Part shown: piece after piece, positions 3,001 to 46,174 of the stretch
Position numbering within the stretch: the first letter of the stretch is position 1
Layout: each line of letters starts with the position of its first letter
NCBI RefSeq assembly: GCF_037042905.1
Contig: NW_026974141.1
Coordinates: 10,540,001-10,604,000, forward strand
Direction: 5' to 3'
Source: Lytechinus pictus
Taxonomy: Eukaryota
Length of the DNA stretch: 64,000 nt
The notes under the pieces: model-generated
What the model saw: only the letters and a program-made list of their open reading frames with translations
Databases searched by the model: none
Told to the model about the DNA's origin: nothing
Made by a program: the position numbers and the translations under genes

Positions 3001-4604
3001 GATTGATGGCTGAAGGTAACTGTGGTTGGATGGCCATCTACTTGCAATTCTTCTGGAATAACGTGCACCATAATGCGATGACTGATTCCAATATGATCAT
3101 GTGCACTGTCATGATAGTTGGGTTCCATTGTACCGACAACACTCCATCCAAGATCAGTTTGTAGTCCAAATGGTCCACCATCATCAGGGGAGCTTAACAC
3201 AGCTCGCGGAGTGAGGGCCCTTGCACAATCATAGCCAATGAGAAGTCCAATCTCACAATCTTGGAGGGGAATCAAATGTTTGGCTATGTCGTTAAGATGA
3301 GGGTGCGCCTTAGCAATGTCTGGCGTTGGTATGTGTTCTCCATTTGCCGGCATAATATTCCGAGTGTAAGTTGGGGGCAAACAAATTTCTTCTCTTCCAT
3401 TAAATGCTCGAACTTTAAGTCCACTGATCTTTTCACTCGAAATTCTCTCATTGGCCAGCGTCATGGTCGAAAGAAGCAAGTTGACTGCTATTCCTTCAAT
3501 GCCCATTGCTTCTTTAGTCTTATCTAAAATGAAGCTAGTGTCTGACTGAGTGTCCAGCATAGCATACACTAACCTCTCCCCATGTACCGATTCATGCGAT
3601 AGCCACACAGGAACTATAGTAGATCTCTTTAGAGATCTGTGATTGTCCTTCGTGGTTGAAGCATGAGATCTTGTGGTTTGAGTTTCCTCAGCTTCATTCT
3701 TTATGTCAACTTTCTTAGATTGTTGTCTTTCTGTCCAGTTTTCATCATGCAGAACAGTGGGGTGACGTCTTTTGCATGTTGAACATGATGACCTCTTCTT
3801 ACAATTCCTAGAAAGATGACCGGACTTTAAACATCCGAAGCACAGACCATGATCGAAAACAAACTTGGGTCGGTGATCTAATGTCTGTGACATGAAGGAT
3901 TTACAAGTAGCAAGATGATGTTCTCCCTTACAGTAGGTGCAAAGGGGTTTCCATTTTCCTTTCCTTCCATTTGCTTGCTGCCCCTGCACACTGGTTGATA
4001 ATGTTCTCACATTAGAAGACTGCTGTCTCCTTTCTTTCAAGGGTGATGTCTGATTAGAAGTGATCGGATCACAAGCAATATCTGCCTCATTGCTGATAAA
4101 TTCTGTGAAGACAGAAAAGGGAGGAAAGGATCCTCTGTCTTGCCGCCATTTGACTACATTCCTGCCCCATCTTGTGATTAGCCAATCAGGCAGTTTGCTC
4201 ATCAATTTTTTGTTCTCTCTTTCATCATCCAAATGATGTAAGTGATGGACATATCTGGCTGCTGTACAACACTGGTGAAGAAAATCTCCAAATCTCCGAA
4301 GGCCTAAATAGTCCTTGGGGCTGATTTTAGGCCAGTCATCGAGTTTGTCCCGGAAGGCATTGGAAATAACAAAGGGATTTCCATATCTCTCTTGTAGCAC
4401 CTTCATGGCTTCCACATATGCAGCGTCATCTCCTAGCATGGAGTATCCTTTCACTAACACCAATAGTGCACCTTTAAGATACTTCAGCAGGAAGTAAAAT
4501 CTCTCTCCGGCTGGAATACCGCGATGTTCAATGAGAGCGTCGTAACTTCGCTTCCATGATGTGAATTCCAGTGGATTACCATCGAAAACTCCAGGCTCAG
4601 GTAT
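1..4604 (-). pseudogene. BEL/Pao gag-pol polyprotein, frameshifted just after the YVDD motif
   Basis: ORF 2178-4463 diverges after DFYVDDG. The shifted frame (KSVSTEDEAIDLIMR...) is the same frame as the integrase motifs at the window edge. Confidence 0.9.
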
Positions 4605-17915: not shown

Positions 17916-20284
17916 CTGGCGACGAGGACGGGATCGTCTAGGATTATGAACTAGCAACGTTAAAGGAAATTTTTCAGAGAAAAACGACACGACGAACCAT
18001 GGATTTTCTGTGAGGGCAATAACGTGTTGTCCCACGTACTTAATTCTCTGTGGTGTTTTTCGGAAACGTCTGTTCACGCAATCACGGGTACGTCGCCCGC
18101 ACGGATACGGTGAACTTTGAAATAGACTCTTAACTTAAGTCTCTATAACAAGTTAAGTGAAATAACTTGCAATGGCTTCGGCACCCTCGCGTTTTGTGTT
18201 TGAGGAGTTTGACAAAGACGGAGATATTGAAGCATATCTAGACAGGCTTGGTCAATATTTCATCGCTTTGGATATCACGACGGAGACCAGACATGAGGGT
18301 AGCGTAAAGCTATTCTTCTCAGTAGTATTGGTAGTGACACGTACAAAACGGTGAAAGATTTGGCATTTCCAAGCAAACCAAGTGAGATAACGTATGATGA
18401 ACTCAGTGGAATTTTGAGGGGACATTTCCGTCCTAAGCGCTTGGTTGTATCAGAAAGGTTCAAGTTTCATAATGCCAAGCAATCACCAGGTCAAACAATC
18501 TCATGTTTTGTCTCCTACTTGAAAAAGCTTGCTTCTTCATGTGAGTTCACAGGGGGGGGGGCGTTAGAGGAAGCTCTACGAGACCGCTTCATTGCAGGCT
18601 TGTATTCAAGTTCCATTCAGAAGAAACTTTTGTCCAAGAACTATAGATTCCAGGAAGCTGTGGAATTAGCATTAGCAGAGGAGGCAGCATCATGTAACAT
18701 CAAGGACATGTCCAATACTAAAGTAGATAATGGGAAGGTGAATAAGGTGTCATATTCACACAACAGACGTAAGGATGCTACCCAGGTCAAAGCAGGGTCA
18801 ATCTAGTACCAGTAGGCGGCCTAAATGTTATCGCTGTGGACTGTCAAACCATTCCGCGCAGCAGTGCAAACACAAAGATGCTGTGTGTTTTAAGTGTCAG
18901 AAAAAGGGGCATTTGAAGTCGGAATGTAAGTCAGGTGGGAACCAAAGAGGAAAAACAAATTTTCCGCGTCAAGATTATGGTTGCAGATCAGTGAAACAGG
19001 TCTAGGAAGATGATGATGACGGAGCTTACGATGGTAAAATCAACGTAGACTTCCTATACTCTGTTTTTAATGTGAACAACGTGACATCTCAGCCTCCCTA
19101 TATAGTACCAGTGACAATTGAGGGGGTTGAACTGCAGATGGAATTAGACACGGGAGCTGCAGTGTCTATCCTCACCTATGACGATTACTTGAAACAGTCC
19201 AAGCATGTATAATTGCAAGCGATCAGACGTCCGCTGCACGTATATCGAGGTGCAAGGTTAGACTTAGCAGGAGAGATTGATGTGGATGTCAAGTACCAGT
19301 ACATGAACCAAGCTATGACACTTACCTTGGTAGTCGTCAAGACTTCTAAACAGGCTCCACCTCTCTTGGGACGCTCTTGGCTGAGGAAACTGAAGCTAGA
19401 CTGGAAATCATTGATATCTGATCCTCAGTATTCAATCAGTGTTGATGCAGATGTGGGAACGGTTCTGCAGCAGGAGTTTGCATATGTATTTGAGGAAGGA
19501 CTTGGGAAACCTAAAGGCCCACCAGCGTCATTGCATCTGAAGGAAGGTGCTCGACCAAAGTTCTGCAAGGCACGCAACGTTCCTTTTGCTCTACGTCCTG
19601 GTGTTGAGGAGGAACTAAAACGGATGCAGGAAGATGACATCATATACCCTGTAGATTACAGTGAATGGGCAACCCCATTGGTATGCATACCGAAGGCCGA
19701 TGGACGGGTACGCCTACGTGGAGATTACAAGGTGACCGTGAATCAGCAGATTCATTGTGATCAGTACCCCATTCCTACTACAGAACAAGTCTTTTCAAAC
19801 TTAGTGGGAAGAAAGAAGTTCTCTAAGATTGATCTTAAATGTGCATACCAGCAAATGATGTTGGACGAAGCTCCACAGGAACTGGTAACGATCAACACCC
19901 ACCGAGGTCTCTTCTGCTACACAAGGCTGCCATTTGGTATTTCATCTAGCCCAGCCATTTCAATTGGCAGAAATTCATAGAGCAGGTCATATCTGGACTG
20001 GATTGTACTTGTGCTTTCATGGACGATGTGCTCGTGGCGGGAAACACAGACCAAGAGCACATGAGAAATCTGAAGCAAGTCTTCAAGCGTTTCCAGAAGT
20101 TCGGACTTAGAGTGAAGAAGGGGAAGTGTTCCTTCATGAAAGACAATGTGGTCTACTTTGGACGGAAGCTGCCATCCAAAGGAATTCAACCAACTAGTGA
20201 TAAGATTGAGGCAGTTCGCCACGCCCCAACCCCAAAGAATGTGTCTGAGCTTCACTCCTGGTTAGGGATGGTTAACTATCATGC

Positions 20285-22200
20285 CCCCTCTCATCACTAC
20301 TTTTTATTATTGTTGCAGAAGTTTTGGCGACGAAAATTAAACAGAATCATAAAATTGAAGGTCTCAGTTTACCGATTTCGCAGATGAATGATGATCAAGC
20401 AGAAGTAAAAATATCCCAATTTGCAGATGATACAACTATATTTATGAAAAATAATAATTCTCTTTCTATTTTGATGGAAGAATTAATACTATTTGGTTCA
20501 AATGCTGGGCCAAGGATTAATTTGCAAAAAACCAAGCTGCTGAAGCTTAATATTGATATTGTCCCCGGACAAATAGAATGTACTGAAGAACCGATAAAAT
20601 ATTTAGGTATATATGTTGGGAAAAATGAGAAAGATGTTGAAGATTATAATTGGCAAAATAAACTAGATAAGATACAAAATATTATTAGAGTATGGAAACT
20701 AAGAAATCTAACATTTTTCGGAAAAATTATTATCATCAAAACTTTGTTGGTGTCTCAAATTGTGTATCCTGCAAAAGTGATTAGAGTTCCCCAGAAAGTA
20801 ATCAAATCTCTAAATAAAATGTTATATACTTTTATTTGGAATTCTTCAAAAGAAAAGGTTAAAAGAAATGTTTGTATAAATAAAACAAACGAAGGTGGTC
20901 TTGGTATGGTCCACTTGGAATCGAAAATTGAATCGCTTAAGATTTCGTGGATAAGCAAGTTGTTAGAGCAAGGCGAACGTAGTTGGAAATTTCTTTTTAA
21001 TTATTGGTTATCAAAGATTGGTGAAATTCCTTTATGTTTTGAATACAATATATCAACAAAAGATATGAATTTTCTTTGTACAAAAGCAAATATACCTAGT
21101 TTTTACCATGATGTTTTTTGTAGCTGGTCTAAGTTAAGATATATTGGTATATTTGGAGTTAAAAACATTGAAAATGAAATCATTTGGAATAACAGCAATA
21201 TTACTTTTAATAAACGTATGTTGGTATTTGAGAAATGGAAGCATGCAGGTATAATTAGGGTAAAAGATGTTATAAGAAATCGTCAGTGGTTAGCACCAAA
21301 TATTTTAAATAAATCTGTCCATTCTTCTCAGCTTTTATTTGATTTAGAATATGCTAAATTAAAAAAGTCTTTTCCTGTTTATTGGTTGAATAAGTTGTTT
21401 AAGGAAAATTATCCACTCGAATTAAAAAAAAGTGAACGAATCGTAATTTCATTAAAAAGTGGAGAACAAATAACTCTAGATTATTTACCAACAAGAAAGA
21501 TATATTCTTTATTATGTTCGGAGGTATCGGAAAAACCAGGCATTGTTTCTTTTTGGTCTAATCTTTTTTCATTACCAGTTTCCTTTAGTTGGAACCATGT
21601 ATTTTATTTTAAGTTGCATTTAATTGTGGATAATAGAATTAGACAATTTAGTTTTAAATTTTTGAACAAGATTTTACCCTCAAGAGACAATCTATTTAAG
21701 TGGCATGTAGTAGAAAACAACTCATGTAACATTTGTGGAGAAGTTGATACCACTTTTCATTTCATACTGTATTGTAAATATGTTCGATTTTTTTGGAAAA
21801 TTATAGAAAGGTTGGTATTTTATATTTTCAAGATTACTATTTCTATAGATGAAAAAACATTAATCATAGGTTATGATCTGCAAAGTTCCAGCAATGTTAT
21901 GTGTAATTTATTTTGTGTTATTGCTCAATTTGTTATTTATCGAAATTATATAAAAAACATATTCAAAGGAAAAAGATATGATGCGAATTCTTTATGGATT
22001 GAATTCAAGCTTACTATGATTATTTATTTAGAAAGTTTATGTAAACAAAAAAGCAAGTTCGGAATTTTGAAAAAATGTGATATTCAAAAAATTATTGCAT
22101 TATTGAAGTGAATTGATTTTTTTTTTTTAATTGTTTGTATATATATATGTACATGTTATTGTGAATAAATACCTCGATTAAGAGGATAAAAGAAAAAAAA
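20285..22200 (+). mobile_element. 5'-truncated L1/Tx1-clade LINE
   Basis: Begins at the RT motif (C)PLSSLLF and ends with AATAAA and an A-rich tail. 11-bp TSD AACTATCATGC at 20274-20284 and 22201-22211. Much more AT-rich than the host Gypsy. Confidence 0.93.
20324..22111 (+). CDS. L1/Tx1 ORF2 C-terminal half (RT C-terminus, thumb, CCHC zinc finger), uninterrupted but 5'-truncated
   Basis: 595-aa ORF with QFADDTT, IKYLGI, EGGLGM and CNICGEVDTTFHFILYC. Confidence 0.9.
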   Translation: MATKIKQNHKIEGLSLPISQMNDDQAEVKISQFADDTTIFMKNNNSLSILMEELILFGSNAGPRINLQKTKLLKLNIDIVPGQIECTEEPIKYLGIYVGKNEKDVEDYNWQNKLDKIQNIIRVWKLRNLTFFGKIIIIKTLLVSQIVYPAKVIRVPQKVIKSLNKMLYTFIWNSSKEKVKRNVCINKTNEGGLGMVHLESKIESLKISWISKLLEQGERSWKFLFNYWLSKIGEIPLCFEYNISTKDMNFLCTKANIPSFYHDVFCSWSKLRYIGIFGVKNIENEIIWNNSNITFNKRMLVFEKWKHAGIIRVKDVIRNRQWLAPNILNKSVHSSQLLFDLEYAKLKKSFPVYWLNKLFKENYPLELKKSERIVISLKSGEQITLDYLPTRKIYSLLCSEVSEKPGIVSFWSNLFSLPVSFSWNHVFYFKLHLIVDNRIRQFSFKFLNKILPSRDNLFKWHVVENNSCNICGEVDTTFHFILYCKYVRFFWKIIERLVFYIFKITISIDEKTLIIGYDLQSSSNVMCNLFCVIAQFVIYRNYIKNIFKGKRYDANSLWIEFKLTMIIYLESLCKQKSKFGILKKCDIQKIIALLK

Positions 22201-24867
22201 AACTATCATGCGCAGTTCATTCCTAATCTTTCTACAATAGTCCATTCCTTGTATGAACTACTGGGATCAAAGCCGTGGTCTTGGGACAAGGACTGTGATA
22301 ATGCCTTCCAAGCTGTAAAGAAGGCGATCTCTACAGAGAGATTACTTACACACTATGATCCAGAGCAGGAGCTAGAACTGAGTGTAGATGCTTCACCCTA
22401 TGGAGTGGGTGCAGTTATCTCTCATGTTGACAACAAGGGCAACAGGAAGCCAGTAGCATATGCCTCAAGAAGCTTAAATCAGAAGCATGAGAAGGGCTAT
22501 GCACATTTGGACAAGGAAGCACTGGCCATTATGTTCGGTCTTCAGTGTTTTCGCACGTACCTGTATGGAAGGAAGTTTGTGATACGTACAGATCACAAGC
22601 CCCTGGAACGGATTCTATGTCCAAGGACTGCAATACCTACCTTGGCTGCCCAGAGGTTGCAACGATGGGCAATCATCCTGTCAGCTTTTGATTATGAGCT
22701 GAAGTATATTCCAGGCAACCAGAATTTTGTGGCAGATGCTTTGTCACGACTTCCCTTACCGGAAACTGTGCAAGGAGATGACGACATCTATAACATTGCA
22801 GCCTATCACATTGAGAGCCTTCCTATCACTAGCAAAGAAATCCAGAACAAGACAAGCACAAATCCTGTGCTTTCTAGGATTTTTAACATGGTGAAAACGG
22901 GAACATGTGTGGAGGACAAACAAGATGAAAGACTCAAACCATTCATCAGAAGGAAGGATGGATTAAGCGTGGAACAGGATTGCCTCTTGTGGGGTTATCG
23001 AGTAATTGTCCCTCCTAGTCTACAAAGAGACATTCTACAAGAGTTGCATACAGCGCATCCTGGCATGGTGCGTATGAAGGAAATTGCTCGCAGTCATGTT
23101 TGGTGGCCCAGGATTAACTATGACATAGAACGGATGGTGAAATCATGCCAGACTTGCCAGCAGACTCGGAACGTTCCAACAGTGGCACTACTTATGCCTT
23201 GGGTATGGCCACAGTCACCATGGACACGTATACAAAATAGATTATGCCCAGGACAAGAAGGACTATCTAGTCATCACAGATGCATATTCCAAGTGGCCAG
23301 AGGTCATTATGATGTCAAGCACAACATCAGCTGCAACTTTTTCAGCATTGAGGGACTTGTTCAGCAAGTATGGAATCCATCTGCAATTAGTTAGCGACAA
23401 CGGCCCTCAATTTGTGAGTGAGGAATTCGAGGATTTTCTCAGAAGAAATGGTGTGAAGCACGTCAAGGTTGCACCATATCATGCCGCAAGTAACGGTGCA
23501 GCTGAAAGGATGGTACAACCCTTTAAAAGATCATTGAGTGCCAGCAAAGCTCAAGGTCGCAGTCTTCAGCAGTGCTTGGATAGTTTCCTGCTTACATATC
23601 GCTCAACCAAGCATGCGACAACTGGACAGACCCCTGCAAGTTTGTTTCTTGGACGGGAGCTTCGCACAAGTCTCAGCTTGGTCAGACCTAGTACCAAGGA
23701 CAAGGTCATTAACAAGCAGAGTGACCAAAAACTTCATCATGACAAACAACATGGTCTGCGTGAATTCTTCCCTGGAGATCGCGTGTTAGTCAAAGACTTT
23801 CGTCAAGAAGAAACTTGGTGGTCAGGAACAGTCGCTGAACGACGAGCACCAAAGTCCTATGTAGTCATCCTGGAGGATGGCAGAGTCTGGAAAAGACATG
23901 TGGATCAGTTGCGGTCAGAATGCAAGGTGTCGATGGACGATTCCACTCATACACAGGTGCCAACACCATCAGCGCCTGTGAATCCAACAGAGACTTTTGA
24001 AACTGAAAGACATTTGTCTGCCCCAGAAAGTCTGGAGGGTAATCACTCTCCCATACAGGTGGACTCACAGATCGAAGATAATCCTGACACTATGCCTCCC
24101 AATTCTGGCGAAGTACTCCCTCTTCGACGTTCTAAGCGTGTAAGGAAGACGCCGGATCGGCTCATCGAGTCCATGTAACAGATGAAGGATGAAGTTTGTA
24201 AATATAGTTTAAGCTTTCTAGTGTTAGTGTTTGAAGATATTTTGATGTTTATTTTTTTCAAGATTTGAGTAGTGTTGTTTGCACAATATGACAGTTAAAG
24301 CAATTATATTCTTTTAAACAAGTCAAACAAACACTTGAATCCGATTACTTTTTTTTAGCATACTATACTGGAAAAGGTAAATTTGAAAGAAATTGTTGTT
24401 GAAAGACAGGAGAAAACAAAATGATTTTCAAATGCCATTTATTGGCAAACCTCACATTAATTTTCGTCATTGATATTTTGGCGGTACAACAAAACAGTGC
24501 AAAACTTGTAAATCACAGAATCAACGACACAGCTCAGATTTTGTTTGTAAATATGTTTTTTATTTGTTGCTCGGACAAATTTGGGCAAAGATCATCATTA
24601 TTGCTTTCATGACTTTTATTTCTCTTTCAAAGGGAGTATTGATCGATTGGATGAAAATTGGTATTTTCATGGCTTGATTTTTTTTATGGAAAACAAAAAA
24701 ATTAATGGTTTTAAAAAAGAGATGAATTTTTCAGGCTTGTGACAATTGTTTATATTGTCTATATTGCAAAAGAAAGAATAAAAAGTTGATGTTAGTTTTT
24801 TTGCATAAAAAAAAAACACATTGGATTTTGGTTAAAGTTTTGGAGGAATAAGCTAAGGAGGGAGGAG

Positions 24868-32654: not shown

Positions 32655-33188
32655 ATTAGCCTTTACACCAGACCTTTCCGTTGCTCAAAAGCATTTGGAG
32701 ACGTTTTGTGGGCTAGAAATAATAGTTTTCAACCATTTTCGGTCCGGATTTCGGGAAATTATGAAAATATGAATATTCCAAATGCAAAATTATGGAACGC
32801 TTCACAATCTTGTGTTCCATGAAGGATAATATTAGCCTACAAACCAGACCTTTTCAATGCCAAAAAATGCATTTGAAGTTGAAGACGTTTTGGGGGATAA
32901 AAATGTTAGTTTTTAACCTTTTTCGGTCCGGATTTCGGGTAATTATGAAAATATGAATATTCAAAATGCAAAATTATGGAACGCTTCAAGATCTTGCATA
33001 TCATAAATATTGATATTAGCGTTTCTATCAGACCCTTTCAATGCAAAAATAATTTGGAGACACTTTTCGGGCTAAAAATGTTAGTTTTTAACCTTTTTTG
33101 GCCCGGTTTTCGGGAAATTATGAAAATATAATTATTCAAAAATGCAAAAATATGGAACGCTTCACGATTTTGCGTGTCATCCTTGCGC
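32655..33188 (-). repeat. Three tandem ~180-bp units, each containing the U6 3' end plus its downstream flank
   Basis: Units start with ATTAGC at 32655, 32831 and 33015. AAAA(T/A)TATGGAACGCTTCA occurs at 32786, 32970 and 33146. Confidence 0.88.
33146..33188 (-). ncRNA. U6: U6 snRNA, 3' part (nt ~65-107)
   Basis: Reverse complement reads GCGCAAGGATGACACGCAAAATCGTGAAGCGTTCCATATTTTT. Confidence 0.95.
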
Positions 33189-33224
33189 CTGCTACATCTC
33201 AATCTTTTTCATTTTTATTGGAGC

Positions 33225-33444
33225 CTGCAGCCAATGACGTTGCCCCGTTTGCCAACAAAAGGAACAACATATGGGCCAGCCGACCAATCAAAGGCGTCCA
33301 TTCGGCATCTTTCCGTCCGAATCGTCTGCCATAGATCACGTCATAGATCACGTGTCACCACTACTTCAAATTGCTTTCTGACGAAGATCTCTCGAACTTC
33401 GAACGAAAGTTTTTGCCGACCTTCTTCTGCAATCAATTTGACAG
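33225..33444 (+). promoter_or_regulatory. Candidate transposase promoter and non-coding first exon
   Basis: CpG-richer patch with CCAAT boxes (~33231, ~33284), a duplicated CATAGATCACGT with an E-box, and a possible donor GACAG|GTAATT at ~33443. Confidence 0.35.
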
Positions 33445-33920
33445 GTAATTTTACCTTTTCTCATGCCAATATTAGTGTTGAATGCTGATATGATTGTTAC
33501 TGCAGAAATTCTGATAACTCTTGTTATGTTTTGATGTGCCATTAAGTGAAAAATTGGATGAAAAATATGACGAGTTTGTCGCGGTTTGTCAGTTGGAGTG
33601 CACTGACGAGTGATAGCTATTGTTTTTCACGTGTATTACAATGGTCGATTTTCACGCGTGTGTGGTGATGAATTGAACTGGTTTGAACTCTGATTGAATT
33701 ATTGATTAGTTAATACCTATACTAGTAACGGTCTGTGGAGCCTAATCCAAATCCGGTGATTAAGTATTGAGTGTTGTGATGTATTAATATCTACCCGAGA
33801 TCATTATTTGTGTCAAAGGCGTGTGTAGGGGATTGTCTTTATTTAGCTTGACTGTGTCTGTGACTTGTGAGAATTGACTTGAGTTTGATCTACTCTCAAC
33901 TTCAAGTATCATACCTCTGG

Positions 33921-34065
33921 CTACCTCAAGGCCAAGTGATGTTCGTGCAGGATCCACTCCACTTCTCTACCGCTACACTACGCTAGGTGGAGCGTAGACG
34001 TATGTAGCGGTAGTGAAGTGGAGTGGAGCCTGCACGAACATCGCTTGAGCCCGAAGTTGAGGTAG
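33921..34065. mobile_element. Hairpin MITE inside the Dada element
   Basis: Near-palindromic CTACCTCAA...TTGAGGTAG; CCTCTGG duplicated at 33914-33920 and 34066-34072. Confidence 0.7.
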
Positions 34066-35335
34066 CCTCTGGCTAACGTCAGTCTTGATGCCTGATGGTG
34101 GGGGAGGTGTTGACTTAACCACCGTGGAGCACTTAACAACATATTTAGGTGGTACGGGGATGGGCCGCTTTGAATGACCCCCCCTTTTCAGTTCTCTAGA
34201 CTAGATGCTTCATGACAGAATTCTATTTAGATGCCGCCCAGCCCCGGTCGCAAGACCCCCATTAGGCCTTACGAAACATGTCAATGCCCAGACCTAGCCC
34301 TGCCAAAATTGTCCAGTGAGAGCTGCATGCTCGCCTTCTCAACCCACTCCGCTTAGCACCGTAAGCGCCCATACATGCACAGCAAGTGTGCACCGTACCC
34401 CCTGTACCGCGATCCCGTTCCGTCACGCTGCCTGGAATAGAGTAGATAGATCTATATTTAGTTCCCAAGACCGTGTATTTTACTCTTGTCAGTTCCTCAG
34501 GGTGTTGTGAGGCATCCACACCCCCATCTAAACATAATTTTAGTGCCCACCCCCCCCCCCCCCTCCCCATTGGATTTAATTTACAAGATCAAAGTTTAAA
34601 AACTCATTCAATGAAGAAGGTTGTGATTTTCTGTTAACTAGGACTCCTTGTGTGGGAAATGAAGTGGGTAATGTTTGCTTGATTGTTTTTTGCATACTGC
34701 AGTTTGCAGTACAACTAGATATATCATCATTTAACTTTGCTCTGAAATAAATTGAATTATTTCAAAAAAAAATTGTAATGAATTAAAAATTGTAATTGTT
34801 GACTAATACCAGTTATGAAAGTGTTACATCACACTTATTGATATATTGTATGTCCATGTGCAATTAATTCCTTTAAAGAAGTGGAAATTTCATAAAAATT
34901 AGATGTAAATAAAGTTATGACATTTAATATTTTTGCTTAGTATCACAAAACAGTAAATATGCACAGCCTGATCGGTATGGAAATGAGGGGGAGTGATGAC
35001 TTCATGAATTTACTTTTTATTTTGCTTGTAAATACATGAAATATGAAATTTATCCATTTTAATTTTGAAATGAAGTTTTATTCCTCCTGAGCATGTGAAA
35101 TTAACATTGTTTTAATATTTGTTGGTTCAGCAAAGTTAGATGTGGCCTGTGATTCCTGCTAATAATTGTTTTTGTATGTTTTTCTCTTTCTTTACCTCTG
35201 CAGCAATCTCCATAGACATTTGGCGGCCATCTATTTGTTATCTGTTTCGTAGTCAGTCTTTGTTTTGTCTTTCTTGTGTCTCTGTGTGTGTTAGTACTTT
35301 TGTTCTTTTCAGGTCTTTGAAGGAGGGAGGAAGAC

Positions 35336-38300
35336 ATGTTCGAGCCAGCGTTCTTCTACAAAGGCAACATCCTGAGGTTGGGGGATTCAGATAGAGCCAG
35401 AGCCTTCACCAGACCAGAGGGATTCAAGGTACGCCCAGCTGTAGAAGTTGAGAAGGAGGCCAAGAGGGAGGTCCAACGCCTTGGTGGAGACCCAAGTCAT
35501 CGTGTGTCTGTGCTGGCCTTCTCCAGAGTGCAGTTTGGCAAGTACCCAGGACAGACCTTCAAGTGGCTGGTGGAGAATGCCCTGGGATGGTGTGCCGAGT
35601 TGATGTGGAACATGGAGCGGACTGGGGAGAAGTTGGACCCAAAGAGAGACCAGTCCGTCAACAAGTTTGCCCTTAAGGAGTACATCACAGCATTTCCTGA
35701 AGGGTGTGCCGCTGTTGAGATGAAGAGGAAGAAGGGGAAGCGTCAGACAGCAGGATGCAGCCAGAGTGAGAGTGGACGACCTCCAAAGACTGGATCCATG
35801 AAAGATCAAGGTAAGTCATTTTTTATTTAAATTTAATTAAATTTATATTAGAATTTTGAATAAACGGAAATGGGGTGCAAAGAATTTGTATGTTCGTTAG
35901 AGATGTGTAGGAATCCTTTTTATTGAAGTTTATTTTAAAGGTAAAATTATAGTAGATGCTGCAAACAGTTATTTCATGAGAGAGTCTTTGAAAATAACCT
36001 GTATATACTGGTCGGTCTGAAATAGCCCAGTTAAGATAGGGTTAATGTTAATTGCCACAATATTATCATAGATCTACATGTAATAAATTTAAAGTAACTT
36101 TGTGAAATCATGAAATCTTATCTCAAAACCAATAATTCTAACGATCAGTAGTGAGAAGAATGTATATGCGGCACAGTGTATTGATAATGTTTTTAAAATG
36201 CCCAACATATTTTATTTAACTCTGCTTATTTTGCTAATTTATCACCAATGACACATTTTTTTTCCATTAGCTATTAAATGTCATTTTAAGATTGCAACCA
36301 CAAGTGGTGTTTATAGCGTTAATAAATAGAATGATTGTTCATGAATAGAAATTGTTAATAAATATAATTTAATTGTTAATTGCAGTGATGCCACTTATTA
36401 TAGCAAGCTCTCTGACAATTAAGTCATTGGTGATAACTTTCATAAAACATTCCTTGGGATATTTATGACCAAATAGCATAAATATTGACAGTGAATGAAT
36501 ATTAAAATATTAGGTTGATATCAATATGAACTTTATACTTCCCCCAATAGGTGAGGGACAAGTTTTCGATGATGACCTCACTGATGCTCAGTTGATTGAA
36601 GCATTTCTACAACGTTCCTCCTTAGATTCTGCAGGTGCGTATTGTATTATAAGTTAACACATAATGTAAATTTTGTATTGGTCTTTCTTGAAATGGCTTT
36701 GCTAAAAAAAAAACCTACTTGTAATTGAAAAGAGGAGAGGAATGCGAGAGAGCAATAGAGGAGGTGTATAAAATGGAAGAAAGAGAGGAATTTGAGTAAT
36801 GTAAAAAACAAAAACAAAGTAAATATATTAAAGCATAAAAAAAAGGAATTCATTAAAAATTCCATCAAAGCTAAAATGTAGAACATACTCTTCATTCAGT
36901 GTTTTTATATTGTAATGTGTTAACAGGAAATGTGAATGCTCATATTATTTCACTGATCACTTTTTTGTATTTTTAAGAATTTGAATATCCCTCTCCTCTA
37001 ATAATCAATGTTTTGTTTTGTTTTTTCCTTTTAGAAGCCACTACATCAAGAAAAGTGACTTCAACATGCAAGAGAGCAGTAGCAGATGACGGAGATAAGA
37101 CAGGTAAATGTGGTTCATTTTTTCTTTTCTGGACATTTAACTTATGGGACAAGAAATATGTACTGCAACCAATCTAATAAAGTCCAACACTAGATATAAT
37201 TTTTTGTTAGTGTGCACTACACGTGTGGTTATTGAGAATACCTTGAAAGCATTGAAATAAATACATATGTTTCTTTATAGTAGAGACTGTCTTCCCTTGC
37301 ACCTGCCATTTAAGATTGAACTTTTTTGCACGATTAGTGTGAACAATGATTGGATGACACCTACATAGAGAAGAAGTAGCTTGATAATGTAATAACTGTA
37401 ACATTACTTGTACATTATTAGAAGACAAATATTGTTTTCCTTATTTTATTTGCCTTTATTCTCCTGATTTCATTTTTCAATGTACCAGCATGTTACATTA
37501 TTATGATGTGACTTGAATCTCTTTCAAAGATTAATATATCTGTATATTCGTCTAAATTATCTTTGTACTTTTTTTTCCAGAGTACCTCCTGACCGAAGGG
37601 TGGAAGCAGACACTACCACGTCAGGATCATCAGTGGGTTTCACGTGCTTTGTTCAAGGTGTCAGCCCGTGGGAAGCCTGAGTTTGACATGCAGAAGATCA
37701 ACACACTTTGGTTCTTCCCACCTTTACCACAGTTCGCTCAAGGCCAAGCTCCAAAGCCAGCACGTTACTTTGCGACCAAACTGCTGATGTGGATGCCTCG
37801 CAAGCTTTGGGGATTGAAGATTCTTTGTCCCAACAAAGAATGCAACGGTCAGGAGCTGTTATCAGCCGGTGTCTACTCCCATGTGCGACAGGTCATGGAC
37901 ATTGATGGATTCTACAACATGGGTGCTGAGTACCTGGAATGCAGAAAGTGTCACAAGAAGTTCATCAGTTGGAGCAAGCCCATCTTAGACCAACTGGACA
38001 CCAGTCACCGGCTGTCATTCCCGGTCTTGCTCACATACAGGTTAGTGAATATCTTGTCAATATCCAAAGAATATTCCTTTATTTCTTGTTTATGTATAGC
38101 TTTTGCATTGCTTTATTATTATAACACAATTCATATGTCATTGTATTTCTGTTAATTTATTTCTTAAACTTATTGTTTTCAAACTATTTAATTAATTAAC
38201 GTCATTGACTTATTATTATCATTATCTTGTATTTCCCAACTTTGCTTACCTAATTTGTAATATGAAAATACTTTACACTTTACATTTCCTTTCTTGTTTG

Positions 38301-41300
38301 TTAAATGATTAATTATGTTAATGTATGCTATTTGTCAAGCGCTTAGATACATCATGTTAAGCGCAATATAAATACAATTTTAATTATTAATACTTTACTT
38401 CATTGCACCCTATACTGCTATAATGCGATATTTCAAAACCATATGACAGACATATGACAGTGATATACTGATTCCTAAATTTCTTCTTTTTGCTACAGAG
38501 GTGCTTGTGACAGGAAAATCATCGGGATGATGCGGGACAGGACACTTGGCAACGGACCATTCCAGATGATCCGCAAGCTCAAAGAGGTCCACACCGATGC
38601 TTGGCTTGCAAAGACTGCCCAGTATTGTTCTGTGGTTGAGGAGTTCGTCAATGCCAGTGAAAGGGGCCTCATCAATCGACCAAACTGCCCACCACCGCCC
38701 GCAATGTCTTCTCTTCCCACGTATCGTTGGCTCCTGACGGTGTACTGCAACGACGTGCTGGAGCGCATCGATGAAGTGAAGGCTAGCATCACATCTACAT
38801 TCGGCCGTATCCTCAAGATGGACTCGACCAAGAAGGTGAACATGAATGTGCTATTCATTTGATGTAATATCATCTTGTGTAACAAAATGGTTAACTTAAA
38901 AAATTCAAGAAAATGGGTGATGAACGTTTGATTACAATCAACCACTTTTAAGCATCTAATTCTTTTATTGTTGCTTGTGTGGTTTAAGTGGTGACTGACA
39001 GCAAAAACATTACACTTTAAGGACTTTCAATTAAGACTTTGATTAATAATTGTAATCTCATTCCTGTTTGTTTATCAATGTTTCTTTACTTCCTTCATTT
39101 CTCTGTATAATATAAATGTGTATGATTGTATAAGATACTTGAAATTCATTCCATTTCTGAAATTTATCTTTTCATCACAGATCACAAGGAAACTGAGAGG
39201 CGAGTCAGCAGGGACTGCTGCTTGGGCATCCAACGTCGGCAACGAGTACGGACAAGTACTGATGTCCGTGATGACTGTTGGCGAGGGAGCCGGTCTCTAC
39301 GAGATGATCAAGGGCATCCAGAGACGGTATGCAGCAGCCGGCCAACCTAGACCAGAGCTTCTGTACGTGGACAGAGGCTGCTGTGGTGCGGAATCCAGGA
39401 TCTTCAGGGGGTGGCCAGACATGCCTGTCCGACTTGACGTCTGGCACTTCATGAGGAGGCTTGCTAGAGGATGCACCAGCACTGAGCACCAACTCTACCC
39501 GTTCTTTCTGAGACGGTTGTCAGCCTGCATCTTTGCATGGAGCGCAGACGACCTGAATCAACTCATCGCCGCAAAGAGAGGTGAACTCAGGGACCAATGC
39601 ATCGCTGAAACTTCTGATGAGGTCATCCTGAAGCACCTTGGAAAGAGCTCGATCGCACGACACTGCAGACGAGTGACCAGAGGAACGGAGGAGACTACCC
39701 AACTCATCGGAGATCTCTTGGCTTCCTTGGATGGCGAGGGAGGACATGACACACTCGGTGTTCCCCTCTTTGACTCCGACAGAGTGTGGGAGATTTGGGA
39801 CTCACAGCAGAAACACATCGCATGCCTACAAGATCCACCAGATGTCCAGCTCTACACCAAGATAGGAGAGTCAGTGAAAGGTGGCATCACATTGCCTGTG
39901 TACAGATGTGCTAGAGGGTCAACATCGCTGGAGTCCTTCCATCTTCACATGAACCGGTTCATCCCTGGTAAGTTCATGTCTTATATCACTTAAAGTGTTG
40001 TAAAACAAGTGTTATAAAATCTGTCAATGTAAGATCATGCTGATTCTTCACCATCATGTCACTATTTGGAGCATCTTTATTTCTACAGGTTTCTGTCTAC
40101 ATTCCTTTTGTGTATTGCAATGGATACATTTCATAATACATTCGAAATACTTTGTTCATTTCATTTTTCAGGGACATCAGCCAACAATGTCCACTTCCAG
40201 GCCTACCTTCTTGAGGGGGTACATCGATGGAACTGCGATCGTGCAAGGGATGCTGAAGCTGCCACTGCGCCTTCTCACGCATCATATGGCACCTACAATG
40301 AGTACGATGTCAACCGGTTGACCGAGAAGCTGTTCGGACTTAAGATCAACCCTACTCTGACTGCACCCCAGAAACACACAGGTATGCCAATGCCTTTTCT
40401 ATTGTAGTCCATTCATATATGACTCCTAATGGTCTATGAGTTATGTCAATATAAAATGCATTGAACTGATGAAATGAATTATTTTGTTATCTCAATTTTA
40501 ATTCCATTTATTCAAAATTTATCTAGATCTGTATTCCTTTCTTTCTGTCAATTTATTTGTTACAGGGGAGCTTATCGGCCTGGAATATCTCTTCAACCAG
40601 ACCAACGAGGAGCTACTTCCCATGCATCCTGATGAAGGGGAGGTAGAAGATGATGATGGCGAGGACGTAGGACGTCGGGAAGAAGAGGACGTAAAGGACC
40701 CGACTGAGCCACCCCCGGAGTTTGGAGTAAGCCCTGCTTCATCCCGACGTGCCTCGAGAGTGTCAAGCCAGCAATCAGTACCACAGCACGTTAGCAGTGA
40801 GTATTTCCTATATTTTCAACGACTTTTCTTTGATTGTATTTTCAGGGAGTCATTACTACGAGCTTTACTTCAACAATTTATTCCATGACAATTGGGAACT
40901 TACACTGCTGCTCAGATGTTGTTGCAGTCCAAACACATGCTGTATCTTTTACTTTTTTATTTCTTTGTAAGACATTGTACCATTTTTGGATCAATGTATT
41001 CTTCATTGCTAAATTAAATAACAATTCGATATACCTGCAAAAACACAATAATAAATCTTCCGAGTGACTTCCCAACATTAGAAAATATTTCTATTTCTTC
41101 TATCTCATTTTACCTACAGCAACACCACAGAAACACAGATCACAGAGATCATCACTGCCGGTTCCATCCACCAGATGCAGACCCCACACATCCAAGGCAC
41201 CGGCAACAGTATCACGTGCTCCAGATTCACCACCACCAACTTCAATTCACAGAACATCCACAGCACCAGCAACTGTCTCCCGGGCACCCGATTCTCCAAG

Positions 41301-43562
41301 GGATGACACACCGGATGGTGGACCACTTGCTGGAGATGAAGAAGTGAAGGATGTCGAAGATGTGGATCTTAGAGAAGAGTCCGACGTAAGAGAAATAATT
41401 TGTATTTTTATAATGCTTATTTCATTCATTTATTTATTATAATAAATGAATAAAATGAAATAAGTATGAATGATTCATTTTAAGTGTCCATGGGAAAAAA
41501 TAATACATGTTATTGATGGCTTCATTCAGAACAAGTTGGCCTGAATAATTAATTTATTTTAAGATGTTATCTTTTTTCTTGTCTTACATACAAAGCTTGC
41601 ATTTAAAAATATTATTTATTTCACTTTTTTTGATTTGATGTTCCTGTTATAATCACTAGTCATTTTATAAATGGATGGCTATAGAAAATGACATATAGAT
41701 TGTAGTCACACTGTTTATCAATGTGCAATTCTCTTTTGTTAATCCCATCATATGCATTGTCCTCTTTATTGTAATTTTACTTTTACAGGAGGAGCACACA
41801 GGTCGCAGACCAGGTTACGACCGTGTGCAAGCACTGGGGAACTACCTCCTCAAACTCAGAGGTGACGAACATCTGATGAGCTCCAGGGACTCCAAACAGA
41901 TCGTGAAACTTTGGAGCGAATTGGATCCATACGACCAACAAGTGAGACGCCCGGCCCGTCACCAAGAGAAGCTCACCAAAGGACGCTTCAAAGCCAGAGG
42001 AACATCTCCAGTTGTCCCAGGCATAGAGAGTACTCAAAGGTATGTACATTCAACTCTATTAATTTTTCTGGGTGATTTATCATGATGCAATCATGAGCAG
42101 CCTTCTTGTCTACTTTGCAAAGATATAGAATAAAAAAGAAGTATCTCAACTCGCCGATATTGATTTCATTCATCACATTCCAGTTCTTCGTTTATATCAA
42201 TCACCTTATTACTTTCACTTACAGCAATACAACCAGCAGTTGAAGTGTGCTGTACACGATTTCTTGATGTATTTTTCTATCATTGTATATTTTTTCCTCC
42301 CCTCGTACAGATGCTTTCTTGGAAGTAACTCAGGACCCGCCTCCGTACCCAACGCCAACAGGGTTATGGAGTATGTCATCGGTCAGCTCTGCAGCTACTA
42401 CCCAGAGCACCAGAGGCACAAAGGGAGAGTCATTCCCAGGTGGACCACTATCATCCATGACTACAAGAACATTCGAAGCAGGGTCCTGGCCTCCACCCAC
42501 ATAACATCCAACACCCGCCTACAATTGTTAGATATCAATCGATATGTCCTCATTCAATGGTAAGAATATTGTAAAATGAGTTAAATTTCGAGCACTTGGA
42601 AATTTCTTTTATTGAATTGAATTGATTTCTTTTACATACTTTGGAACATACAGATAATTAATATGGTATATCAATCATACCTGAATTAAATAATACAGCA
42701 ATTTGAAATCAAAGACAATTTAAAATATAATGAATTAGATGGAATCATTGAAAGCAATTCAATGGCATCACAATTTTATTTGTAACAATTTATCTGTGTT
42801 ATTACAAAGTATTTCAAATGTAGCAATAGATCGTATCTTTAGCAATATCTATCTCCCTATGAAATACAGCCTGTCTAATGGCATTTTTCTTTCTCTTCCT
42901 TTTCTTATTTCATGTACAGGCATAACCGAAGATCTAAAGAAGAGGAGAGGAGTGCATTGGAGATGGGAGCTTCGGCACCTAGACCTAGCATGACTGCCCA
43001 CCAATCTGTCCCACCACCAAAGGAGAAACCACATGCCTTGCCACCACCTCCCATCCAAAGGCCCTACCAGTTCCCGATGGTTTCCAACACAGTTGGTCAG
43101 GCAAAGATGAGAGCACCAATAGCACAACCAACATTTGTTCTGGTTCCTGTTCCTGTAATGGCCGTACCATCAACCCCTGTGTCCACCCCTGCCCCAACTA
43201 CAGTCTCTGTCCCTGGATTCCGGTCCATCCAGCCTACACCTCCAACCTGGCGGCCCAGTGTACCACAGCCGAGTCTACCACCACCTTCATCACTCCCGAA
43301 GTCCACCCATTACAACAGGAAGCGCAGAGCACAGCAACGACTCGAAGGACAGGTTTCTACCAAGGTTTACAAGGCCCGGAAAGGTCCGATTGTATGCAGC
43401 CAGTGTCATCAACCAAGGGATCGAGAGACTCACACTCAATATTATGGCAGCTGGTATTGCGAGACATCCCAGAACCAACCCTTGGCTGAATGGAAGGCGA
43501 TGATGTCAGAACGGCGACTAGCAAAGCTGAAAGCTGACAAGGAGGAAGCCAAGAAGGACTAG
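35336..43562 (+). CDS. Dada DDE transposase, 12 coding exons, ~1353 aa
   Basis: Exons with GT-AG boundaries and consistent phases: 35336-35810, 36551-36634, 37035-37103, 37581-38040, 38499-38835, 39181-39967, 40172-40381, 40566-40796, 41120-41385, 41789-42039, 42311-42559, 42920-43562 (4062 nt). Motifs: CPxxxC..ECRKC, KMDSTKK, YVDRGCC, RLDVWHF (DxxH), RGSTSLESFH and a C-terminal CxxC..H..C. Confidence 0.88.
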
Positions 43563-44665
43563 TGCAGTGAATAATATGTTTATCAAGACGGCAGAAGTCG
43601 GGTCGCCGGCGACTAAACTGGCGCCACCTACTGGAAGCTATGCCAGTAGGGAGGGGGATTAAGACCTCCTGCAGGATGAAAAACAAGACCTGTTAAAGTG
43701 GATCATTGCACCAGTCAGGCACAAGCAACATCGTATCTATGGATTTAGGACACACTAATGAGAAACCAGAGGAATGAGAAAAATGGAATGAAGATTGCTA
43801 ACCTTCAAGGAGAGAGGAAACAGTATAGGTAGAAAGAGGAGATTGTGGGCAGCTTCATATGAAAAAGGGTCAAACATTCATTGAGAAATAAGGACAGGTT
43901 TTAAAACAACAGTGAAAGACCATCTGGAAGATATAGAACATATTACAAAAATTGTTAGATGACAACAGCGGCAGCAGAATAGTGAGGAATCATTGCAGAA
44001 ATTTTCAAATTCAATACAACTACGAAAGCAGATGGGATATTTCAGCAGTTTTCGAGAAAAGCTACAATCTGATAGAAACTCATTTTCACCGCCACAAAGT
44101 ACCCCGAGGAGCTCTGGTTCTTGCAATCATTGAGCATCTCGAGTGGTGACTCAAGTTATATCGACATTCACGACGTCTCAGTGCTATAGTACGATATCCA
44201 TGATGGATAAGCATTGAGGACTTAGTGGAATGTGCAACAGAATTTAGTAACAATGAAACATGTTAAGAAAAATAAATGTTGGATGTTATACAACAAAGTA
44301 CTGTACCTTAGACAAGCAACTCCTAAGGTGACTATTTTTTCCGATCGTTCACGGGTATCCTTGTGAAGCTCCATATTTAATATGTTGAGCATCATTTGCG
44401 ATGACTTTGTGGAGCGGTCTCTTAAAACTAGTGTGATAATGTCAACTAGTTTGGTTTTTAATGCTGCCAAGACATTAACCAACTTTCTTCAAACTGCCAT
44501 TCAAATTTGTTGAAAATTGGTTGATGTTTTGAAGGTCCCAAGCCCTTGTCAAAAGCAGAGGGAAAACCAAGTAATGCTTCTTGAAAAATCCCAGGAGAGG
44601 AAAAGACGTAGGAAAAGAGAGAGATTAAAAATGATGGGGGAGGGATTTACAACCTTTCGGCACTC

Positions 44666-45100
44666 GCATCCTTCTTGTATAAATGTGACTTAATACCTTT
44701 TTCCACACTCATAAATGGGATTTACTACCTTTTAGCACTCGCACTCACAAATCTTAATGACTTCTTGAAAATAATTATTTTTAAAAATGTGACTTGCTTC
44801 CTTTTGGTATAAATGTGACTTAATACCTTTTTCCACACTCGTAAATGGGATTTACTATCTTTTAGCACTCACACTCAAAAATCTTAATGACTTCTTGAAA
44901 ATTATTATTTTTAAAAATGTGACTTGCTTCCTTTTGGTATAAATGTGACTTAATACCTTTTTCCACACTCGTAAATGGGATTTACTACCTTTTAGCACTC
45001 ACACTCAAAAATCTTAATGACTTCTTGAAAATTATTATTTTTAAAAATGTGACTTGCATCCTTCTTGTATAAATGTGACTTAATACCTTTTTCCACACTT
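44666..45100 (+). repeat. 130-bp tandem repeat, ~3.3 copies, in the Dada 3' region
   Basis: Units start at 44666, 44796, 44926 and 45056. Confidence 0.9.
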
Positions 45101-46104
45101 ACAACTACATATATATATATATATATTATATATCATTTTTTTTTTTTTATTCATGACTAAACTACAACAAATCTTTTGAAAGGTTTATTATTTATTCCCT
45201 GGGGAAGGAGAAATAGGAAAGAAACTTTTGCTTCAATTATAAATTAATAAAGAAGGCATTAATGAATAAAAAAATGAATGAGTAAATGAATTAATGAATG
45301 AGTCAAGGAATGAATGAAAGAAATAATAANNNNNNNNNNNNNNNNNNNNNNNNNNNNNNNNNNNNNNNNNNNNNNNNNNNNNNNNNNNNNNNNNNNNNNN
45401 NNNNNNNNNNNNNNNNNNNNNNNNNNNNNNNNNNNNNNNNNNNNNNNNNNNNNNNNNNNNNNNNNNNNNNNNNNNNNNNNNNNNNNNAAATGAAGGATCT
45501 TTCTCTCATTCTATTTCTTTTTCATTACTTTATCCCCCCTAACCCCCCCCCCCCCCTCTCTCTCTCTAATCAATAAATTTGAAAAGACAAGATATATCTT
45601 TCCTTCCATTCTTTCATTTTCTATTTATTTATTTATTTATTTATCTATCTAATATTCTTCTTATTTATCTATTTATTCATCTAATATCTATCTATACATA
45701 CATATCTTTGTTTATCTATATCTTTGTTTATCTATTAATTATTCTGTCTATCTACCCCCCCCCCCCCTCTCTCTCTTTCAGAAGTGAAAAATACAATGAA
45801 CACAAACATAAATGCAAAATACATTCATTTCATTTCAAACAAACTGCATTTATTAAAAAATCAACCGTCATTACATTACAATAAAAATCGTGCCTAAAAT
45901 GTCATTATTTACTTTCTTTTTCCCCCTCTCCGGCGTTCCATACGCCCGAACCCGACCGATTTGTTTTCAAACAAGGCTCCATTTCCCACGCCAGCGATGG
46001 CTCCGCCCCCCTTCTATGGCAGACGATCTGCCCAAAAATCCACAAAACAGCGCCGGCGTGGGGGCCTATGGGACGCGGGGACAGAGAAGATTAGTCGGTA
46101 GCTT

Positions 46105-46117
46105 TTGCGCAGGGGCC

Positions 46118-46149
<32 letters not shown>

Positions 46150-46174
46150 ATAGATGTGTTGCCGAAGCGAACAC
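46105..46174 (-). ncRNA. U6: U6 snRNA, 5' part (nt 1-70)
   Basis: Reverse complement reads GTGTTCGCTTCGGCAACACATCTATTAAAATTGGAACGATACAGAGAAGATTAGCATGGCCCCTGCGCAA. Joined to the 3' part with one TSD removed, it gives 107 nt. Confidence 0.96.

Follow-up and report, generated by a model that had tools for sequence, protein, structure and literature searches.

We analyzed a stretch of 64,000 nucleotides from the genome of the sea urchin Lytechinus pictus (RefSeq assembly GCF_037042905.1, contig NW_026974141.1, positions 10,540,001–10,604,000 of the forward strand), hereafter the window, in which a U6 small nuclear RNA (snRNA) gene is split by a long insert carrying a putative transposase gene at 35336–43562. 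The 5′ part of the U6 gene lies on the minus strand at 46105–46174 and matches positions 1–68 of the Rfam model (70.6 bits, E = 7.6e-16). The 3′ part, from GCGCAAGGATGAC onward, was placed by the Rfam U6 alignment on the same strand at 33146–33188. On both halves, the hexamer TTGCGC adjoins the intervening DNA, at 33183–33188 on the left and at 46105–46110 on the right; read in the U6 sense this is GCGCAA, and the U6 gene is interrupted at model position 68 with GCGCAA on each side. Since each half carries TTGCGC, the DNA between them is an element of 12,916 bp (33189–46104, plus strand) that was inserted into U6 with a 6-bp duplication. Two other full-length copies elsewhere in the genome share these ends and have matching U6 junctions. 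The transposase gene is oriented opposite to U6 within the element, and a run of N at 45330–45487 was kept as N.

Dada-U6 DNA transposons are described as inserting at this same U6 site, with a 6-bp GCGCAA duplication and in the opposite orientation to the gene (PMC3706591, Kojima and Jurka 2013). Dada-U6 insertions leave U6 fragments of about 1–70 and 65–end, with a duplication of GCGCAA or GCGAAA, and the split seen here, with the 5′ fragment ending at model position 68 and GCGCAA on both sides, agrees with this. Because the element lies in U6 at the published site with the GCGCAA duplication, 35336–43562 is very probably the transposase gene of an autonomous Dada-U6 transposon. The preliminary description of this locus, made from the sequence, had called the gene a transposase, and the split U6 gene, the duplication and the published Dada alignment support this more specific assignment. 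On the same three grounds, a KDZ/Zisupton-type or hAT identity, considered from the motifs alone, was dropped.

The sub-terminal repeat CAGAGAAGA, described in PMC3706591, was found as a perfect 9-mer at 46082–46090 (plus strand), at the end next to the 5′ half of U6 and 14 bp from the duplication, mirroring this 9-mer as it stands in U6. Two stretches, 33321–33335 and 46013–46027, form a perfect inverted repeat of 15 bp (ATCGTCTGCCATAGA and its reverse complement), at distances of 132 and 77 bp from the left and right ends, respectively (chance expectation ≈3e-4). This repeat, which is not mentioned for Dada in PMC3706591 or PMC8869645 (Kojima 2022), is a candidate transposase binding site.

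Structure of the transposase gene

The short plus-strand open reading frames (ORFs) in 35336–43562 join as one open frame, with GT–AG boundaries throughout, consistent phases and no in-frame stop. Exons were searched singly, phase-compatible GT–AG pairs were enumerated around the cores defined by homology, and split junction codons were checked one at a time. The supported model has 11 exons and 10 introns of 184–1224 nt, with a coding sequence of 3978 nt, corresponding to 1325 codons and a stop. The ATG at 35336 aligns with residue 1 of the homologues P0001, P0162, P0163 and P0155, and the alignment to P0001 reaches its last residue at 43559, immediately before the stop codon at 43560–43562.

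The single GT–AG-joined frame had been proposed in the preliminary description and was borne out, with the start and stop matching the ends of the homologues. Instead of its 11 coding introns and ≈1353 amino acids, homology supports 10 introns and 1325 amino acids. The difference is an optional exon of 84 nt (36551–36634; 28 amino acids) with good splice signals (acceptor ...cccaatag, donor CAGGTGCGT), inclusion of which keeps the frame and yields 1353 amino acids. A short-peptide BLAST search of this exon gave no significant match among ≈190 relatives, and the exon is absent both from a diverged paralogue of the gene (copy D, described below) and from the RefSeq model of that paralogue. An older copy of the element on C7 is uninformative on this point, since the whole of 34551–37031 is deleted there. 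The frame is open with or without the optional exon.

Exon 1 (35336–35810; this and all following exons are on the plus strand) starts with the initiation codon and ends at the donor aagGTAAGT in phase 1. Exon 2 (37035–37103), with 23 codons, corresponds to residues 164–186 of P0162 and is also present in the RefSeq model of copy D. The Pfam domain DUF6729 matches exons 3 and 4 (E = 1e-47 in exon 3; also 8e-19). Exon 3 (37581–38040) encodes the first part of this domain, including an N-terminal zinc finger of the CCCC type, with its Cys codons at 37826, 37841, 37940 and 37949, and exon 4 (38499–38835) encodes the end of the domain and the first catalytic Asp, in the motif KMDSTKK (38815–38835, D codon 38821; D conserved in 38/41). 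The rest of the catalytic residues are in exon 5 (39181–39967): the second Asp in YVDRGCC (39364–39384, D codon 39370), the DxxH motif (39436–39447, with D at 39436 and H at 39445) and the Glu in SLESFH (39925–39942, E codon 39931). These are followed by exon 6 (40172–40381), exon 7 (40566–40796), encoding an acidic low-complexity tail where the lengths of the homologues vary, and exon 8 (41120–41385), encoding a Pro/Ser/Thr-rich linker that corresponds to residues 869–939 of P0162 and 876–961 of P0163. Exons 9 (41789–42039) and 10 (42311–42559) encode the two parts of a conserved C-terminal domain, the latter with homology to P0002, P0022, P0155 and P0163, and exon 11 (42920–43562) encodes a CCHC zinc finger at the C-terminus (codons 43389, 43398, 43425 and 43452) and the stop codon.

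The residue numbering of P0162, P0155 and P0163 is continuous over junctions 1/2, 2/3, 3/4, 4/5, 8/9 and 10/11 (at 8/9, P0162 continues from 939 to 940). The split codons at junctions 5/6, 6/7, 9/10 and 10/11 encode Gly, Gly, Arg and Trp, respectively, the residues conserved at these positions in 43 long homologues. In addition, the first seven exon boundaries coincide with those in the RefSeq model of copy D.

A search with exon 5 returned 1756 cluster representatives at E ≤ 0.001, and fish, amphioxus and hemichordate proteins were among the homologues. The two Asp residues, the DxxH motif, the Glu and both zinc fingers all fall on columns conserved in the family. Some 200 columns are strongly conserved among the 43 long homologues, and the window gene differs at only four of these, none of them catalytic or zinc-binding. 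The block ILKMDSTKK...VGNEYGQVLMSV...YVDR.CC is also present in the published Dada alignment (Dataset S1 of PMC3706591). From N- to C-terminus, the predicted protein consists of an N-terminal region, the CCCC finger within DUF6729, an RNase H-like core with an Asp-Asp-Glu (DDE) catalytic triad, an acidic and Pro-rich linker, the C-terminal domain and the CCHC finger. The features that define the Dada superfamily, namely homology, DDE and C/DxxH motifs, CCCC and CCHC fingers, and insertion into a multicopy small RNA gene with a 6–7 bp duplication, are all present at this locus.

The fold of the core was addressed with an AlphaFold model of a natural paralogue, residues 380–800 of P0001, which is 87–89% identical over exons 4–5; the alignment consisted of 38 homologous segments. 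The model had a mean predicted local distance difference test (pLDDT) score of 82 and a predicted template modeling (pTM) score of 0.76. In the numbering of the model, the first Asp (D69) lies in strand 65–72, the second (D137) just after strand 133–136, DxxH after strand 156–158 and the Glu (E324) in helix 321–333. Between DxxH and the Glu there is a mostly helical stretch of ≈160 residues, and the DDE core is accordingly modeled with a large insertion domain at this point. Among solved structures, the closest was ISCth4, a transposase of the IS256 family (Z 12.2, 240 residues, root-mean-square deviation 4.5), and further structural matches in the PDB included retroviral integrases (Z 7–8.6), Tn5, the P element, Hermes, Transib and RAG1. 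At the sequence level, the core profile matched no PDB entry at E ≤ 10. The paralogue model thus supports the assignment of the catalytic core to the RNase H-like DDE domains, and such a core with DxxH agrees with published work that places Dada among the C/DxxH transposases. All the catalytic motifs (D, D, DxxH and E) and terminal Cys/His clusters listed in the preliminary description were found, the latter as the CCCC and CCHC fingers, and the RNase H fold that it had named as a check is present in the predicted structure of the paralogue.

Genomic copies of the element and their divergence

The genome contains three full-length copies of the element: the one in the window (copy A, C21:10.57 Mb), copy B on the minus strand (C21:5.36 Mb) and copy C (C7:27.79 Mb). 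The U6 junctions of the three are identical letter by letter, and TTGCGC and the U6 halves flank them all. They share ≈99.2% substitution identity over the element (a difference of ≈0.8%), and their private differences (56, 43 and 44 over 11,353 sites compared among the three) form a star-like pattern. Beyond the U6 unit, which is all that copy C has in common with the other two, its flanks align with theirs at ≈60%, the random level. Copy C is therefore an independent insertion, with at least two U6 loci independently occupied. The family has transposed recently, and the youth assumed in the preliminary description is supported by three intact copies that differ so little. A genome search with both element ends found no non-autonomous derivatives.

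The exons of copies A, B and C contain no stops or indels, and every splice site is retained. Variable sites make up 18/3978 positions in the exons (0.45%) vs. 79/4177 in the introns (1.9%; Fisher P = 9e-10), and the introns have an additional 146 gapped columns. Of the 18 changes in the exons, six are non-synonymous, against a chance expectation of 74% (P = 3e-4). The low exon variation and the scarcity of non-synonymous changes indicate purifying selection on the exons of the transposase gene; the lineages leading to each copy were therefore selected for an intact protein, as expected if only working elements reached new U6 genes.

The genome also holds an older, degraded copy and more distant Dada families. 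The old copy on C7 (C7:27835500–27851499), 40 kb from the intact copy C, is 81–92% identical in exons and introns alike; it is rearranged, with stops, and carries an internal duplication as well as the deletion of 34551–37031. The diverged paralogue, copy D (C18:14796400–14811700), is annotated as the uncharacterized protein LOC129281443 of 1124 amino acids (P0001 = XP_063969339); when the pieces of P0001 were mapped to C18, eight of the nine showed 97–100% identity and one 81%. Copy D is collinear with the window gene at an exon identity of 78–90% and lacks exons 9–10, and no U6 half was found within 20 kb of it. A counterpart is annotated in L. variegatus. Copy D is a relic or else a Dada gene that was domesticated.

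Downstream of the gene in the window, a non-coding block at 43699–44601 (plus strand) is 78–90% conserved with copy D and occurs only in the Dada copies of the genome; it is possibly a 3′ untranslated region or a cis-acting region. Upstream, the 5′ non-coding part of the element includes a repeat of ≈250 bp (34882–35137), of which there are many genomic copies at 75–78% identity; it stops where the similarity to copy D (87%) begins, ≈200 bp upstream of the ATG. Elsewhere on C18, five segments with a spacing of 1.1–1.3 kb (C18:14832884–14837926) are ≈80% identical to the left sub-terminal region 33280–33581. This array does not itself contain U6; an intact U6 is located at C18:14849201.

Two other features were observed in the element. 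A near-perfect hairpin of 95 nt (33943–34037) occurs in all three copies and gave sub-threshold matches to Rfam mir-885 on both strands, and a 130-bp tandem repeat in the 3′ non-coding part (44662–45099; 3.4 units, 95% matches) varies in unit number between copies. Outside the element, retroelement ORF fragments with DUF1759, reverse transcriptase, RNase H and integrase zinc and core domains are present at 2178–4463 (minus strand) and 19213–24178 (plus strand), in agreement with an earlier remark on decayed coding elements in the window.

Possible present-day activity and comparison with known transposons

By analogy with other DDE transposases, and in line with the proposal in PMC3706591, binding to the sub-terminal repeats, and to the U6 sequence around CCCCTGCGCAA that matches them, would fall to the C-terminal domains and the part with the zinc finger and DUF6729. 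The DDE core would cut the element out and join its ends into another U6 gene over a 6-bp stagger at GCGCAA. Insertion into multicopy U6 genes would be nearly harmless to the host. On the most far-reaching interpretation, the window would contain one of three intact, selected copies that encode a cut-and-paste transposase with strict U6 targeting, still active in a laboratory sea urchin, and this would be the first Dada-U6 described in echinoderms; we assign to it a probability of roughly 0.4. For the ability of the family to transpose today, taken by itself, we put the odds at or slightly below even.

Several observations weigh against the explanation of the locus as an autonomous Dada-U6 transposon. 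The element has a very low copy number, with three full-length copies, and the left-end counterpart of the 9-mer CAGAGAAGA matches at 5/9 positions, identically in copies A, B and C. Copy A has a Ser (TCC) at 39229–39231, one of its two private amino-acid changes, at a site where 42/43 homologues and both sister copies have Thr. The flanks of copies A and B are 92–99% identical for at least 1.2 kb on each side; A and B may therefore be one insertion that was later duplicated. In the gene model, the exon 7/8 junction in the low-complexity linker is the least certain, with splice signals as its sole basis, and the optional exon at 36551–36634, possible but unsupported, is not fixed by homology. 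Expression was surveyed in four raw RNA sequencing runs, two from each of two organisms, over 37563–43562 (exons 1–2 lie outside), with 6–25% of each run sampled. The runs yielded 4, 0, 4 and 16 reads, all of 95–99% identity and none at ≥99%; no splice junctions were seen among these 0–16 reads per run, which are too few to speak for or against splicing or activity. In the protein collection, a word search based on the paralogue P0001 turned up no annotated product of copies A, B or C. The preliminary description had expected that the gene would be annotated as an uncharacterized host gene, and this turned out to hold for the C18 paralogue LOC129281443. None of the listed sequence records containing the stretch is recorded as RNA.

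These data could also be explained by a recently dead or silenced element, in which the frame is open and the family immobile because the host silences it, a subtle change has inactivated it or its ends have degenerated. We regard this as a serious contender, though short of probable. The near absence of RNA from the four runs, the presence of only three copies, the degenerate left sub-terminal repeat and the private Thr-to-Ser change of copy A at a conserved site would all fit, as would the fate of the older copy nearby on C7, with its rearrangements and stops. Against it, the ratio of non-synonymous to synonymous changes (dN/dS), together with the four-fold lower divergence of the exons, is the signature of a function that was required on the lineages to each copy, and the residues invariant in the family are all retained. 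As to the scarcity of RNA, low expression is usual for transposases, and the fraction of each run sampled was small.

It is improbable that the copies owe their similarity not to transposition but to U6-bearing blocks that were duplicated as segments or underwent gene conversion, with the open frame a by-product of their youth. The location of copies A and B on one chromosome and their shared flanks would suit this explanation, but it is at odds with copy C, where the flanks beyond the U6 unit are at random level, and it leaves both the four-fold lower exon variation and the scarce non-synonymous changes unexplained. Slightly less probable still is that the true mRNA differs from our model and is interrupted, making the gene a pseudogene in practice. 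This idea draws on the lack of junction reads and of an annotated product and on one junction and one optional exon that are unverified; however, nine of the ten junctions are fixed by continuous homologue numbering or conserved junction residues, and the frame is also preserved in each alternative splice pairing that was listed. Lastly, it is very unlikely that this is a host gene domesticated from Dada, as dDada is in cyprinoid fish: purifying selection on the exons and the state of copy D (no U6 half within 20 kb, no exons 9–10, an annotated L. variegatus counterpart) could be cited for it, but the three copies each lie in a complete element with a U6 target duplication, and D, D, DxxH and E, mutated in dDada (PMC8869645), are intact here.

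An intact, selected family with complete ends would be a concrete substrate for tests of transposition and target recognition. Dada is the only known superfamily of DNA transposons that strictly targets small RNA genes present in many copies. L. pictus is amenable to laboratory breeding and injection. If the family is still active, working protein and ends could be taken from nature for a first biochemical test of how a DDE transposase reads a small RNA gene, and the system could be a starting point for safe-harbor integration into U6 arrays. In the literature collection searched, the phrase "Dada transposase" occurred in two papers, both of them computational. The hosts given for Dada-U6 are Chordata, Arthropoda, Mollusca and Annelida, without echinoderms (PMC3706591; PMC8869645); among sea urchin genome papers, the repeat table of one includes an entry "Dada", and another mentions Dada. 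Our results extend the range of Dada-U6 to a fifth animal phylum and identify as Dada transposases the DUF6729 proteins listed as "uncharacterized protein LOC..." in genomes of echinoderms, hemichordates and amphioxus.

Compared with the published Dada-U6 elements, the L. pictus element has the same target gene, insertion site and GCGCAA duplication, and its gene is likewise opposite to U6. The two also agree in the absence of terminal inverted repeats, in the position of CAGAGAAGA, here at the right end, 14 bp from the duplication and in a very low copy number. The zebrafish Dada-U6_DR has 11 exons encoding 1402 amino acids, with DDE, DxxH, CCCC and CCHC motifs (PMC3706591), and the same exon number and motifs are seen here. 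The L. pictus element differs in its echinoderm host, in its length (12.9 kb vs. a published range of 4.7–11.0 kb), in its degenerate second sub-terminal repeat (5/9) and in the extra 15-bp inverted repeat. The predicted core resembles those of ISCth4/IS256, MuDR, hAT and P-element transposases in its RNase H-like fold, the helical insertion before the Glu and the C/DxxH motif after the second Asp. It differs from them in having no detectable sequence similarity to any PDB chain, and Dada-U6 is set apart by strict small-RNA-gene targeting, a DUF6729 N-terminal module and a C-terminal CCHC finger. Like the L. pictus gene, dDada of the Cyprinoidei is multi-exon, derived from Dada-U6 and under selection (PMC8869645), but dDada occupies one syntenic locus and has D, D and DxxQ mutated, whereas L. 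pictus has three complete elements in which the catalytic residues are intact.

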